A DNA stretch of 64,000 bases, from the IMG/VR virus record IMGVR_UViG_3300028840_001395, positions 62,001 to 126,000 of that record, one strand, 5' to 3'. A program made the translations under genes and the position numbers. The notes under the pieces are model-generated. The model had not been told where the DNA came from, did no database searches, and was given only the letters and a program-made list of their open reading frames with translations. Positions 23,246-60,868 of the stretch are shown piece after piece (positions within the stretch are counted from its first letter, which is position 1; each line of letters begins with the position of its first letter).

Positions 23246-23332
23246 GCTGGGATGGCGGAATTGGTAGACGCGCCGGTTCGAGAGGCCGGTGGACTTAGTG
23301 CCGTGGGGGTTCGACTCCCCCTCCCAGCACCA
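23246..23332 (+). tRNA. tRNA-Leu(GAG), C at position 33
   Basis: Cloverleaf, long variable arm, loop TCGAGAG, CCA. Confidence 0.75.
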
Positions 23333-23334
23333 AT

Positions 23335-23427
23335 GGAGAGGCAAGCCGATGGGTGACGGCAGCCGCTTGGAAAGCGGTCGAGGTCTGTTGAAGGCCCTTG
23401 AGGGTTCGACTCCCTCTCTCTCCGCCA
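23335..23427 (+). tRNA. tRNA-Ser(GGA)
   Basis: Loop TTGGAAA, CCA. Confidence 0.9.
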
Positions 23428-23439
23428 AAGAAACGCAGT

Positions 23440-23528
23440 GCTGGGGTGGCGGAATGGTAGACGCGCCAGGCTCAGAACCTGGTGGGACGCAAGTGCCCGT
23501 GGGAGTTCGACTCTCCCCCTCAGCACCA
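23440..23528 (+). tRNA. tRNA-Leu(CAG)
   Basis: Loop CTCAGAA, CCA. Confidence 0.9.
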
Positions 23529-23530
23529 AC

Positions 23531-23620
23531 GGAAGGTCAAGCAGATTGGCGACTGCAGCGGCTTGCTAAGCCGTCGAGGTGTAAAAGCCCTTGGGGGTTC
23601 GACTCCCCCACCTTCCGCCA
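23531..23620 (+). tRNA. tRNA-Ser(GCT)
   Basis: Loop TTGCTAA, CCA. Confidence 0.9.
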
Positions 23621-23630
23621 ACTTCGCTAC

Positions 23631-23706
23631 AGGGGGCGCTCTGGGTAAGCGGGCTGGTCTCCAAAACCGGCTGATCTGGGGAGTTCGATTCTCCCGCCCC
23701 CTGCCA
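23631..23706 (+). tRNA. tRNA-Trp(CCA)
   Basis: Loop CTCCAAA, CCA. Confidence 0.85.
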
Positions 23707-23723
23707 GATGATGCAAAGCGCGT

Positions 23724-23809
23724 GCGGTGGTGGTGGAATGGTAGACACGCCAGCTTGAGGGGCTGGTCCTGGAAACAGGGTGGAGGTTCGACTCCTCTTC
23801 ACCGCACCA
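23724..23809 (+). tRNA. tRNA-Leu(GAG)
   Basis: Loop TTGAGGG, CCA. Confidence 0.9.
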
Positions 23810-23817
23810 ATCTTCGT

Positions 23818-23892
23818 GCTGGGGTAGCTCATTGGTAGAGCACCTGAGTGAAGCCCAGGGTGTAGGTGGTTCGATTCCACTCCCCAGCACCA
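23818..23892 (+). tRNA. tRNA-Phe(GAA), atypical anticodon arm
   Basis: Loop GTGAAGC, CCA. Confidence 0.75.
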
Positions 23893-23903
23893 CAAACTTC
23901 GTT

Positions 23904-23980
23904 GGTTGGGTAGCTCAGCCCGGTAGAGCAGCGGACTGAAAATCCGCGTGTCGGCGGTTCAAATCCGCCCCTGACCACCA
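23904..23980 (+). tRNA. tRNA-Phe(GAA)
   Basis: Loop CTGAAAA, CCA. Confidence 0.92.
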
Positions 23981-23989
23981 AGACCCGTT

Positions 23990-24076
23990 CGGAGAGTTGA
24001 GCAGTGTGGTGAGCTTAGCGGGCTGTAACCCCGTGGCCGATTGGCTTTGGAGGTTCGATTCCTCTCTCTCCGACCA
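23990..24076 (+). tRNA. tRNA-Tyr(GTA)
   Basis: Loop CTGTAAC, CCA. Confidence 0.85.
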
Positions 24077-24085
24077 AGAACGCAT

Positions 24086-24173
24086 GGCGCGGGAAGCGTG
24101 TGGCTGGGACCGCCGGTTGACTGTAAATCAACTGCCTGATGGCTGAGGGGTTCGATTCCTCACCGCGCCACCA
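24086..24173 (+). tRNA. tRNA-Tyr(GTA)
   Basis: Loop CTGTAAA, CCA. Confidence 0.85.
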
Positions 24174-24195
24174 ACTTCGGGGGTATCATGCCCTC

Positions 24196-24666
24196 ATGAG
24201 CGTCTGGTTCCACGGAACGACCCAGGAGAACGCCGAGAAGATCCTACAAGAGGGCTTCCAGCCCGGCACCTACTTCGGTGAGCACCTGGAGGATGCTGTC
24301 CACTTCGGCGGTGGGTTCGTCTTTGAGGTGTACTTCAAGGAGGCACCCTCCAAGAACTGGCAGTGGCGCTGCTCCGAGGTCATCCCCGTGAGCGCGATCC
24401 TCAACCTCATCAGGTATCAACCCGAGGTCGTTCACTGGAGTCCAGAAGCAGCCCGCCGGATGAAGGCGGATCACTTCGAGGAGGAAGGCTACACCATCTG
24501 TGACACCTGCGATGGCAGAGGTCAGATGGAAGCCTACCCGCCCCTCACCCACTGGCGCGACCGGGAGAAATGCACCCTCTGCCCCGACTGTAGGGGGTAT
24601 GGCTCCCCAGACAAACGCGACGCCTGGGATGAAATGTCCAGGAAGATGGAAGAGGCAAAGGGTTAA
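24196..24666 (+). CDS. ADP-ribosyltransferase-like domain plus CxxCxGxG zinc finger
   Basis: WFHGTT...ILQEGF...YF; CDTCDGRG, CPDCRGYG. Confidence 0.55.
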   Translation: MSVWFHGTTQENAEKILQEGFQPGTYFGEHLEDAVHFGGGFVFEVYFKEAPSKNWQWRCSEVIPVSAILNLIRYQPEVVHWSPEAARRMKADHFEEEGYTICDTCDGRGQMEAYPPLTHWRDREKCTLCPDCRGYGSPDKRDAWDEMSRKMEEAKG

Positions 24667-24752
24667 GGCCCTGTGGCGGAATTGGGAGACGCGCCCGCCT
24701 TAAAACTGGGTGTCCTAGCGGCGTCCGGGTTCGAGTCCCGGCGGGGCCACCA
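24667..24752 (+). tRNA. tRNA-Leu(TAA)
   Basis: Loop CTTAAAA, CCA. Confidence 0.8.
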
Positions 24753-59102: not shown

Positions 59103-59554
59103 GGGAGGCCCATTTCTTGTAGAATCTTGACCCGAAGGTCGCCTCGCTCGATAGCCGACTTCCGCCGATGGCATTTTGCACAGCGGACCTCGCATTTCGC
59201 AAGCTCCGCTTCGACTCGGTGCCACGCAGGTAGCCGATGGTAGATGGTTGACAGACCCATGACCTTCTTACCTCGCACATGGTCGAAATCAAGGACGAGG
59301 GGGTCTGTCTCTCCACAGTCCACACACGGATGAGCGAGAAGATACGCCACGATGCGGCGCGTGTACAACTCCCTTCGGGCAGCGTTGTTCTTTCCGACGT
59401 TCTTCCGATGGGATGTCTTGTTCTTCTTGTACCAGGACTTGCGGTACTCCGCCTGGCACCGTTTGCACATGGACTGGTAGCCGTCCTTCTTGCTCTTGTT
59501 GGTGTTGAACTCCTTGAGAGGAAGGGAACGCCCACATTTTCCACAAGTCTTCAT
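59096..59554 (-). CDS. HNH endonuclease
   Basis: CGKC...CKRC; CVDCGETDPLVLDFDH...CAKCH. Confidence 0.85.
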   Translation of the reverse strand: MKTCGKCGRSLPLKEFNTNKSKKDGYQSMCKRCQAEYRKSWYKKNKTSHRKNVGKNNAARRELYTRRIVAYLLAHPCVDCGETDPLVLDFDHVRGKKVMGLSTIYHRLPAWHRVEAELAKCEVRCAKCHRRKSAIERGDLRVKILQEMGLPC

Positions 59555-59606
59555 ACGGGGAGTGTACCAAGGGCGGCTCCTAAAAGCAATCACCCTTTCA
59601 AATTCA

Positions 59607-59682
59607 TGGTGGGCCGAGAAGGATTTGAACCTTCAACCTTCAGGGTAAGAGCCTGCTGCACTATCCGTTGTGCTACCGACCC
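59607..59682 (-). tRNA. tRNA-Lys(CTT)
   Basis: Loop CTCTTAC, CCA. Confidence 0.9.
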
Positions 59683-59695
59683 ATGAATGAAAATG

Positions 59696-59771
59696 TGGTA
59701 GGCCCGGAGGGAGTCGAACCCTCAACTTCCCGGTTAAGAGCCGGGTACTCTGCCAGTTGAGCTACGGACCC
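59696..59771 (-). tRNA. tRNA-Lys(CTT)
   Basis: Loop CTCTTAA, CCA. Confidence 0.92.
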
Positions 59772-59799
59772 ACATGCTCGTGAAGGACGCCGTTTTAGA

Positions 59800-59929
59800 C
59801 AGGATTCGGGAGAGAGGCCCGGTCATCGGTGGGGGTCGAACCCACGACCTCCGGGTTGAAAAAGCCGTCAAGCCGTCCCGACGCTCTGCCGACTGAGCTA
59901 CGACTACGTGGACTTCATCCCGTCCCCTG
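59800..59929 (-). ncRNA. tRNA-like core with extended terminal stem (3)
   Basis: Canonical D and T arms, 21-nt anticodon loop, no CCA, flanks pair CAGG/CCTG and CGGGA/TCCCG. Confidence 0.6.
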
Positions 59930-60066
59930 AATGACTACTGACCTGAACCGTTCCAAGGTTCCCCACTGGCACCCTCGCGGGGGCGGAAAGGTAGGCTTGA
60001 CGGCCCCACCCCCAGGCACCAGGCTTCGCCAGGGTTCAGTCCAGGCGTTCATCCGGCGATAGAACT

Positions 60067-60143
60067 TGGTCGGGAAGACAGGATTTGAACCTGCGACCGC
60101 TCGGCCCCCAGCCGAGTGCTCTACCAGACTGAGCTACTTCCCG
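60067..60143 (-). tRNA. tRNA-Pro(GGG)
   Basis: Loop CTGGGGG, CCA. Confidence 0.9.
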
Positions 60144-60152
60144 AATGTCTCT

Positions 60153-60229
60153 TGGCGGGAATGACGGGAGTTGAACCCGCTTCCTCTGGCGTGACAGGCC
60201 AGCGCCTCCTCCACTTCGGCCTCATCCCC
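60153..60229 (-). tRNA. tRNA-Asp(GTC)
   Basis: Loop CTGTCAC, G73. Confidence 0.9.
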
Positions 60230-60238
60230 TTGCGTTCT

Positions 60239-60315
60239 TGGTCGGGGCGACTGGATTTGAACCAGCGACCTCTCGGATCCGAACCGAGTACTCTTCCAGA
60301 CTGAGCTACACCCCG
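60239..60315 (-). tRNA. tRNA-Pro(CGG)
   Basis: Loop TTCGGAT, CCA. Confidence 0.9.
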
Positions 60316-60325
60316 AAAATGACTG

Positions 60326-60403
60326 TGGCAGGGACGACGGGACTCGAACCCGCGACCTCCTGGGCGACAACCAGGTGTCCTAAACCAACTAGACCACGCC
60401 CCT
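60326..60403 (-). tRNA. tRNA-Asp(GTC)
   Basis: Loop TTGTCGC, G73. Confidence 0.85.
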
Positions 60404-60412
60404 GCGGCGTGT

Positions 60413-60487
60413 TGGCAGGAGTGACGGGAATCGAACCCGCCTCACTCGGGAGACAGCCGAGCTGCATCACCAGATGCACACACCCCT
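60413..60487 (-). tRNA. tRNA-Asp(GTC)
   Basis: Loop CTGTCTC, G73. Confidence 0.8.
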
Positions 60488-60706
60488 ATCGAATGGACGG
60501 ATGGGAAGGGTGTGACCCCTCCATCCCCGTGTCGCGTGGCTGGCCGTGTCACAGCCCTTTGGACTCGCGCCACAGGGACCCACATCTACGGGCACCCCAT
60601 CGTCGGTTACCCCGTCAGGAGTCTCACCTGCTCCTCCTCTCCCGTCCTTCCTCTGTCCGAGGCGACTTGGGTCTGGTGTGCATCTACACCACGGGGTCAT
60701 TGATCT

Positions 60707-60781
60707 TGGCTCCTCGGGAGGGAATCGAACCCCCGACACACTGGTTAACAGCCAGCCGTTCTACCGCTGAACTACCGAGGA
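60707..60781 (-). tRNA. tRNA-Asn(GTT)
   Basis: Loop CTGTTAA, CCA. Confidence 0.92.
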
Positions 60782-60793
60782 ACATTTGACTTT

Positions 60794-60868
60794 TGGCTTA
60801 CCGGACGGGACTCGAACCCGCGCGCTTTACGTTAACAACGTAGTGCTCTGCCGCTGAGCTACCGGCAA
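60794..60868 (-). tRNA. tRNA-Asn(GTT)
   Basis: Loop TTGTTAA, CCA. Confidence 0.88.

Follow-up and report, generated by a model that had tools for sequence, protein, structure and literature searches.

An inherited partition and codon-linked duplicates in the complete, two-array tRNA set of a huge phage

Bases 62001 to 126000 of the IMG/VR virus record IMGVR_UViG_3300028840_001395, a single contig of 435,804 bp, carry two convergent arrays of transfer RNA (tRNA) genes; this whole stretch of 64,000 nucleotides is referred to here as the window. We show that the division of anticodons between the two arrays is a product of descent, the blocks and their gene order having been passed on from a common ancestor of a subclade of huge phages, and that duplication falls mainly on anticodons for the codons that the phage uses most. 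The explanation that we favour, and hold to be probable as a whole, is that the window is a translation module (the two tRNA arrays, a transfer-messenger RNA (tmRNA), an RNase Z-like gene and RtcB) with an inherited partition, duplicates linked to codon use and a pool charged by the host, and that its source is a complete, uncultured phage of ~436 kb from sediment or seawater.

The two tRNA arrays and their descent

ARAGORN made 66 tRNA calls and one tmRNA call in the window, and Rfam placed 61 tRNAs and the tmRNA above the gathering threshold. CCA is encoded at the end of 62 of the ARAGORN calls; a 63rd gene, Ser-UGA, was called at 27038-27123 but has G73 and CCA when shifted by one base, to 27039-27124. 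The canonical total is thus 22 + 41 = 63 CCA-bearing genes, exactly the figures that the initial annotation had approximated from the sequence (Table 1). Pairing in the 62 genes that ARAGORN ends in CCA reaches 6.9 of 7 in the acceptor stem, 4.9 of 5 in the anticodon stem and 4.95 of 5 in the T stem; with stems this close to perfect and an encoded CCA, the canonical genes are not pseudogenes. Their discriminators are mostly the usual bacterial ones (G73 in Ser, Trp, Gln, Asp and Asn; U73 in Gly, Cys and Thr; A73 in Leu, Tyr and Phe). The 45 anticodons found among them read 61/61 sense codons under standard wobble rules and cover all 20 amino acids, as had been proposed for the amino acids. All the normal class II (long-arm) tRNAs that the phage has are in array 1. 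Elsewhere in the record there are only four further tRNA-like calls, all weak, including those at 241943-242033 (complementary strand), 409728-409801 and 412787-412950; one of the four is 91 nt long and has the anticodon CUA, and in two the loop is of 8 nt.

Among the canonical genes no anticodon is common to both arrays, and only Glu (CUC versus UUC) and Arg (CCG versus ACG, GCG, CCU and UCU) are split between them. Both claims had been made in the initial annotation and both hold: the automated calls revealed neither mixed anticodon content nor mostly pseudogene copies, and the single cross-array overlap that ARAGORN reports is the degenerate, CCA-less Leu-GAG remnant at 52092-52161. If the 63 genes are allocated at random to groups of 22 and 41, 7.9 shared anticodons are expected (zero, P = 5e-6) and 8.2 split amino acid families, against the two found (P = 2e-5). 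When adjacent genes with the same anticodon are merged, however, the expectation falls to 2.9 and sharing none has P = 0.02. Most of the signal stems from neighbouring copies separated by just 1-13 nt; the real feature is the clustering of isoacceptors and isodecoders.

Relatives were found in IMG/VR through a helicase and through the AAA_5 ATPase encoded between the arrays. They comprise G003 (381 kb, 72% complete), a lineage represented by G008, G009 and G010 (their tRNAs are identical where G008 and G010 overlap) and G011. In all of them two convergent arrays flank a syntenic block encoding a CobT-like VWA protein, an AAA_5 ATPase, an Mrr_N protein, RtcB, an M23 peptidase and an HNH endonuclease. 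In these two-array lineages the gene for GroEL is found outside the small array. This two-block layout is kept across at least four lineages, and the related phages that have it carry 35 to 51 tRNAs. Anticodons shared with the window are in the same array in 38 of 41 cases in G010, 29 of 31 in G011 and 32 of 33 in G003. Gene order is kept as well: the longest common subsequence with the small array of the window is 12/17 in G010 (P = 2e-4), 6/7 in G011 (P = 0.013) and 11/14 in G003 (P = 2e-4), and with the large array 17/34 in G010 and 15/33 in G011 (both P = 2e-4). The small array contains, in every lineage, the class II tRNAs (Leu, Ser, Tyr) together with Phe, Trp, Thr and Arg-CCG, and in G008, G009 and G010 it is followed by the tmRNA, as in the window. 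It is because the relatives keep the same arrays, anticodon membership and order around the syntenic module that we regard the partition as inherited.

The same comparison leaves the partition, real as it is, with no special meaning. The rule that no anticodon is shared is broken in relatives, by Thr-CGU in both arrays of G010 and by Thr-UGU in both arrays of G011, and single tRNAs have switched array, with Glu-CUC in the large array of G010, Arg-CCG in that of G011 and Ser-UGA in that of G003. The partition is built on a general habit of clustering isoacceptors and does not serve to keep the arrays free of redundancy with each other. CCA is encoded in 63 of the 66 calls in the window, as against 15 of 51 in G010, 6 of 40 in G011 and 26 of 35 in G003.

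Duplicated anticodons, codon demand and host charging

Sixteen anticodons are present in two or three copies: Asp and CAU in three, and Phe, Tyr, His, Asn, Lys-UUU, Lys-CUU, Leu-GAG, Ser-UGA, Glu-CUC, Gln-CUG, Gly-GCC, Ile-GAU, Pro-CGG and Pro-GGG in two. Identity between copies is 62-84%, little more than the 60% averaged over all pairs in the set; the multiple divergent copies first noticed in the sequence are genuine. In a codon table built from 343 open reading frames (ORFs) called by third-position G+C (GC3) and covering 80% of the genome, copy number follows the frequency of the cognate codons (Spearman rho 0.47, p 0.001). Codons read by duplicated anticodons occur at 30 per thousand and those read by single-copy anticodons at 14 (p 0.001), and the commonest codons, GAG, AAG and GAC, are served by 2, 2 and 3 genes, respectively. 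The set also serves codons that are almost unused (TTA 0.1, ATA 0.9 and CTA 1.5 per thousand), and its completeness thus exceeds the phage's own demand. The genetic code is the standard one by the statistics of the ORFs; recoding of TAG, TGA or TAA was considered and rejected, since reading through any stop lowers coding coverage, and TAG terminates 126 of the 343 ORFs.

The copies are old. For Asp, orthologues in G010 and G011 are 87% identical whereas paralogues are 53-58% identical, and the Phe gene at 23904 is 81% identical to its orthologue in G010 but 70% identical to its neighbour in the window. Relatives, too, have duplicates of Phe, Leu-GAG, Asp, Lys-CUU, His and Ile-GAU. We conclude that the copies are old paralogues that predate the splits between lineages and are often more divergent from each other than from orthologues in other phages.

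Searches with the Pfam models tRNA-synt_1, tRNA-synt_2 and tRNA-synt_2b found no synthetase in the complete genome, while the same searches matched 14/14 control genomes. Since no synthetase of these three major families is present, host enzymes would have to charge the phage tRNAs, which fits the conservation of acceptor and discriminator features described below. The idea of a full replacement of the host pool, put forward in the initial annotation, stands as a capacity, for all 61 sense codons including rarely used ones and with genes for a tmRNA, an RNase Z-like protein and RtcB close by, but does not extend beyond the tRNAs.

How the module would work can be outlined. Short spacers, at most 15 nt in 15 of 21 cases in array 1 and in 21 of 43 in array 2, point to polycistronic precursors. 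Transcribed as such, the arrays would be processed by host RNase P and trimming, possibly with the help of the phage RNase Z-like enzyme, and the products charged by host synthetases. The phage tRNAs would then sustain phage translation at times when those of the host run short or are degraded or cleaved; RtcB would presumably reseal cut tRNAs, and the tmRNA would free stalled ribosomes.

Several observations weigh against this explanation. For the large array of G003, collinearity with that of the window does not reach significance (longest common subsequence 9/21, P 0.12). Lys-UUU and Ser-UGA are duplicated although their codons are rare (AAA 2.4 and TCA 2.3 per thousand), which is not a matter of codon demand, and codon demand also leaves the non-canonical loops of some copies, described below, unexplained. 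Among the public runs that contain the stretch there is no RNA run.

Divergent anticodon arms and other readings of the arrays

The copies do not diverge evenly along the molecule. Those with the same anticodon differ at 34-37% of positions in the acceptor stem and at 12% for the discriminator, as against 59-63% and 56% between tRNAs for different amino acids; in the anticodon stem, in contrast, they differ at 51% of positions, against 53% between different amino acids, and in the loop flanks at 34%, against 37%. Same-anticodon copies thus keep their acceptor and discriminator features but not their anticodon stems. The initial annotation had proposed that divergent copies are a hedge, kept as insurance against host nucleases that recognise specific tRNA sequences, so that one isodecoder escapes. 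Divergence of the anticodon stem fits this proposal, since it is the anticodon arm that known nucleases read. The cut made by AriB falls between positions 40 and 41, and the T5 tRNA-Lys escapes this nuclease through substitutions in the anticodon stem at 39 and 41 (PMC12409363); for cluster C1 mycobacteriophages, tRNAs with changes in the anticodon loop at VapC sites have been described and nuclease escape proposed (PMC10264068). The location of RtcB between the arrays, and the duplication of Lys-UUU and Ser-UGA, are also in keeping with a hedge. However, isoacceptors with different anticodons are equally saturated (anticodon stem 50%, loop flanks 35%), so that old age combined with constraint on identity elements alone explains the divergence equally well. 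When rates were compared by region in 23 pairs of orthologues that are at least 78% identical, 10.9% of positions differed in the loop flanks against 17.7% in the rest of the molecule; change in the loop is not accelerated and bears no sign of an arms race. The anticodon stem of the orthologues differs at 32% (p 1e-6), as is expected of a stem that covaries freely. Loops are identical in several of the pairs of copies (Lys-UUU, Glu-CUC, Pro-GGG, Ser-UGA), and copy number, as seen above, tracks codon demand. Although insurance against nucleases can coexist with the explanation that we favour, we regard it as a tentative possibility, with the odds clearly on the other side.

The loops themselves hold further departures from the norm, which may be counted in favour of the hedge. 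Six of the 63 canonical genes break the Y32-U33...R37 pattern (7 of 64 in the ARAGORN calls, the seventh being the remnant at 52092). C33 is found in Leu-GAG at 23246 and Val-GAC at 58212 and recurs in G003 (five times), G010 and G011; C37 is present in His at 46446, U37 in Asp at 60413 (also in G011), G32 in Phe at 23818 (also in G010) and A32 in Ala-GGC (also in G010). As Val-GAC is single-copy and reads a common codon, its C33 is not simple decay. A more speculative reading, which we consider improbable if worth stating, is that the clade keeps long-lived isodecoder pairs or triplets with deliberately unlike anticodon stem-loops, including the almost forbidden C33 and a pyrimidine at 37. 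Some copies would then have altered identity sets, and the whole would be a standing insurance, backed by RtcB, against nucleases of the anticodon arm or against the synthetases of different hosts.

With the same low likelihood, two unusual tRNAs of array 2 could add non-standard decoding. The first, a tRNA with the UAU anticodon and a class II shape (48534-48628), has G1-U72 and a shape like that of Leu or Tyr and unlike that of a normal tRNA-Ile; Leu-UAA is the closest to it within the set (67%), none of G003, G010 and G011 has it, and AUA is, as noted above, a codon of 0.9 per thousand in the phage ORFs. The second (52406-52481) is well folded with an 8-nt anticodon loop and may be a quadruplet-reading tRNA or a decaying gene. 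It is one of three aberrant calls, all in array 2 and all lacking CCA, the others being the remnant at 52092-52161 and the tRNA-like sequence at 59821-59907.

It has also to be considered that the arrays are separate transcription units with different timing (early and late, for example), the partition regulating decoding capacity. The opposite-strand, convergent layout is conserved in four lineages, a promoter-like site precedes array 1, and 30% of the phage's codons can be read by array-1 tRNAs alone. Yet proteins need amino acids from both arrays, and a temporal split would starve translation unless host tRNAs compensate; moreover, single tRNAs move between the arrays in relatives without visible compensation. 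Regulation by timing seems unlikely.

Slightly less likely still is that the divergent copies serve different hosts, their identity elements allowing the synthetases of several host lineages to charge at least one copy. Differences of this kind do exist: the His copies (46446-46598, minus strand) have C1-G72/A73 without an encoded G-1 in one case and G1-U72/U73 in the other, the Gly-GCC copies (51231-52057, minus strand) have U73 and A73, and the Ser-UGA copies (25467-27124, plus strand) have U73 and G73. From their sequences, these differences could reflect several hosts, and dependence on host enzymes, in a phage for which none of the three synthetase families was found, is compatible with this. 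However, the discriminator is the same in 14 of the 16 pairs scored, as is much of the acceptor stem. Finally, an artefact, in which misassembled repeats or decaying pseudogenes inflate the count, has next to no standing: the three aberrant, CCA-less calls might be taken to suggest it, but copies at 62-84% identity are too divergent for collapse or duplication by an assembler, contigs of three runs from three studies match without differences, and 63 genes have near-perfect stems and an encoded CCA.

Neighbouring genes, source genome and known systems

Table 1. Position, strand and main properties of the features discussed, in coordinates of the window
Feature	Position	Strand	Remarks
Sigma-70-like promoter match	22941-22968	+	TTGACA, 16 nt, TATCCT; ~280 nt upstream of the first array-1 tRNA; a consensus match only, 4 found in the region versus 1.1 expected
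Array 1 (small)	23246-27124	+	22 tRNA genes (ARAGORN, Rfam): Leu ×6 (GAG ×2, CAG, UAA, UAG, CAA), Ser (GGA, GCU, UGA ×2, CGA), Tyr ×2, Phe ×2, Trp, Thr ×3, Glu-CUC ×2, Arg-CCG
ABC/OLD-type ATPase (AAA_21/AAA_15)	25920-26801	+	Inserted in array 1; accessory, not conserved in G003
317-aa protein	27239-28192	+	Next to the array-1 ATPase; not conserved in G003
tmRNA	28688-29048	+	One-piece, tag ANDEAVLQAA; RF00023 168 bits versus gathering 47; downstream of array 1
CobT-like VWA protein	33335-35953	-	Conserved module between arrays
MoxR/CobS-like AAA_5 ATPase	36200-37429	+	Conserved module; 59-67% amino acid identity in relatives
RtcB RNA ligase (predicted)	39107-40513	+	PF01139 1-426/426, E 8.5e-89; phrog_1075; between arrays
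HNH endonuclease	45464-46012	-	3' edge of array 2; conserved in G003
Array 2 (large)	46117-60868	-	44 ARAGORN calls, 41 canonical genes and 3 aberrant: Asn, Asp, Pro, Lys, Val, Arg (UCU, CCU, GCG, ACG), Gly, Ile, Met/CAU ×3, Ala, Gln, Cys, His, Glu-UUC; protein genes interspersed
RNase HII	47885-48505	-	Inside array 2
UAU-anticodon tRNA	48534-48628	-	95 nt, long variable arm (class II shape); A73, CCA, Rfam 53 bits
RNase Z-like metallo-beta-lactamase protein	48619-49485	-	Inside array 2; PF12706 match
PD-(D/E)XK (PDDEXK_5) endonuclease with helix-turn-helix, homing-endonuclease-like	51297-51926	-	Inside array 2
Degenerate tRNA remnant, called Leu-GAG	52092-52161	-	70 nt, no CCA, poor acceptor stem, Rfam 41.7 bits
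Well-folded tRNA, 8-nt anticodon loop CTTATCAA	52406-52481	-	Incomplete CCA (3' end ACC then T), Rfam 58.3 bits
Second PDDEXK_5 endonuclease	54812-55228	-	Inside array 2; E 1e-34
R2K-clade ATP-grasp enzyme	58296-59225	-	Inside array 2
tRNA-like sequence	59821-59907	-	~15 extra nt in the anticodon arm, no CCA, Rfam 43.9 bits
Cytidylyltransferase-like protein			Interspersed in array 2

The protein genes discussed are listed in Table 1. The RtcB of the window is 61-66% identical to that of G003; it scores best against models of intein-containing RtcB, yet is without the insertion. In G003 (stretch G003:46001-92000, joined-stretch positions 23055-25496), RtcB is found in two pieces ~1 kb apart, residues 1-94 and 93-468, and the gap suggests an intein or another insertion. 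All NCBIfam matches of the RNase Z-like protein are to RNase Z or RNase BN models and are below the cut-off; the best, TIGR02651, scores 86.9 bits against the required 293. The protein is thus a divergent relative and is named RNase Z-like only; a pattern scan of IMG/VR found no relatives of it. A PolyA_pol/CCA-adding-enzyme head domain is encoded outside the window, at 15386-15838 (minus strand) of the record, within an open frame of 2,495 residues, and the same domain is present in a 3,122-residue frame in G003.

The CobT-like VWA protein and the AAA_5 ATPase form a conserved pair between the arrays. The N-terminal motifs of the ATPase inserted in array 1 match the PADLOC models for AriA, PtuA and GajA; PADLOC had no other match, and a search with this ATPase led only to distant records with scattered tRNAs (G001 and G002). 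For the adjacent 317-aa protein no match was found anywhere, including the Atlas, and sequence searches with the other uncharacterised proteins encoded within or between the arrays were fruitless, the PDB yielding just a marginal P-loop match (E 0.0055) that was of no use. Just upstream of array 1 are genes for a phage GroEL (17363-18973, minus strand) and for a protein of 1,003 aa whose core is a topoisomerase IB of the eukaryotic type (19025-22036, minus strand).

The record has a G+C content of 62%, a terminal repeat seen as a 144-bp overlap and a CheckV completeness of 100%; at more than 200 kb it falls within the size class of huge, or jumbo, phages. Its viral status is taken from the IMG/VR and CheckV classification. 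Pfam terminase models, including Terminase_6C, had no accepted match in the record; a weak match to Terminase_6N was rejected as a terminase because the protein is a helicase. Contigs from three public runs, belonging to three studies (two sediment and one seawater metagenome), contain the sequence and show zero differences from the window over 49650-55600, although the runs may include the source sample. In the metagenome runs the summed contig depth rises 20- to 200-fold at 51043-51241 and 52436-52634, over tRNA genes for Ala (and a neighbouring Met); tRNAs of other organisms in the samples are at least 90% alike, and the phage genes at these sites thus closely resemble common bacterial tRNAs. 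A near-identity DNA search of isolate phages returned short tRNA matches only, and hence no close isolate, and a genome scan with RNase HII, intended for host inference, gave just a 25% match, in a metagenome-assembled genome of Bacteroidia.

Huge phages that carry as many as 67 tRNAs, along with tmRNAs and ligases acting on cleaved tRNAs, have already been described, some with up to 15 synthetases (Al-Shayeb et al., 2020; PMC7162821). The phage studied here resembles them in a genome above 200 kb, dozens of tRNAs, a tmRNA and a predicted RNA ligase for cleaved tRNAs. Its genome is not in the tables of that work, however, and it has 63 genes and 16 multi-copy anticodons but none of the three major synthetase families. 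Among published genomes the nearest is LR745208.1 (GWB1_PHAGE_COMPLETE_CIR-CU-CL_55_23; 485,034 bp, Rifle groundwater), with a helicase 58% identical, for which a weak Spirochaetes signal, ~10% of genes, is tabulated (PMC7162821). Isoacceptors cluster in this phage too, which is more distant than the IMG/VR relatives, but its 34 tRNAs form about eight isoacceptor mini-clusters that all lie on one strand; none of its anticodons is duplicated, and the two-array layout is absent. The cultured Xanthomonas jumbo phage XacN1 (384,670 bp) has 56 tRNA genes for all 20 amino acids (PMC5852040); they are located in direct terminal repeats of 66 kb, whereas the arrays here are internal and the terminal overlap is 144 bp. 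Searches of the phage collection revealed no sequence relationship between XacN1 and the window.

In phage T4, Pnkp and Rnl1 repair tRNA-Lys cleaved by PrrC, and RtcB enzymes join 2',3'-cyclic phosphate or 3'-phosphate ends to 5'-OH ends. The likeness to T4 is a phage-encoded enzyme of RNA-end healing or sealing, able to undo cuts in the anticodon loop, which for the window is predicted from its gene; the difference is that the enzyme family is RtcB and not Rnl1/Pnkp. Other phage tRNAs that evade nucleases are those of T5, namely tRNA-Lys, tRNA-Thr and tRNA-Asn versus the PARIS nuclease AriB (PMC12409363) and tRNA-Tyr versus retron effectors (PMC11555353). These phages and the cluster C1 mycobacteriophages share with the present one a richness in tRNAs and non-canonical anticodon loops or stems, to which a predicted repair ligase is added here. 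The host tRNAs and the nuclease were identified in those systems, and escape was predicted or measured; the published cases (PMC10264068, PMC12409363, PMC11555353) do not rest on multiple divergent copies of the same anticodon in one phage.

What sets this genome apart is the combination of one of the fullest tRNA sets (63 intact genes, 61/61 codons), none of the three synthetase families and a conserved two-block layout. With 63 intact genes among the fullest of any virus, it offers a clean case for asking what purpose a complete viral tRNA pool serves. The related phages, whose two blocks are the same but hold fewer tRNAs, make it possible to follow how such a pool grows through clustering, side-by-side duplication and copy number linked to codon use. 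The old, divergent isodecoder pairs with their odd loops, in turn, are ready substrates for asking whether sequence diversity protects against tRNA-cleaving defence.

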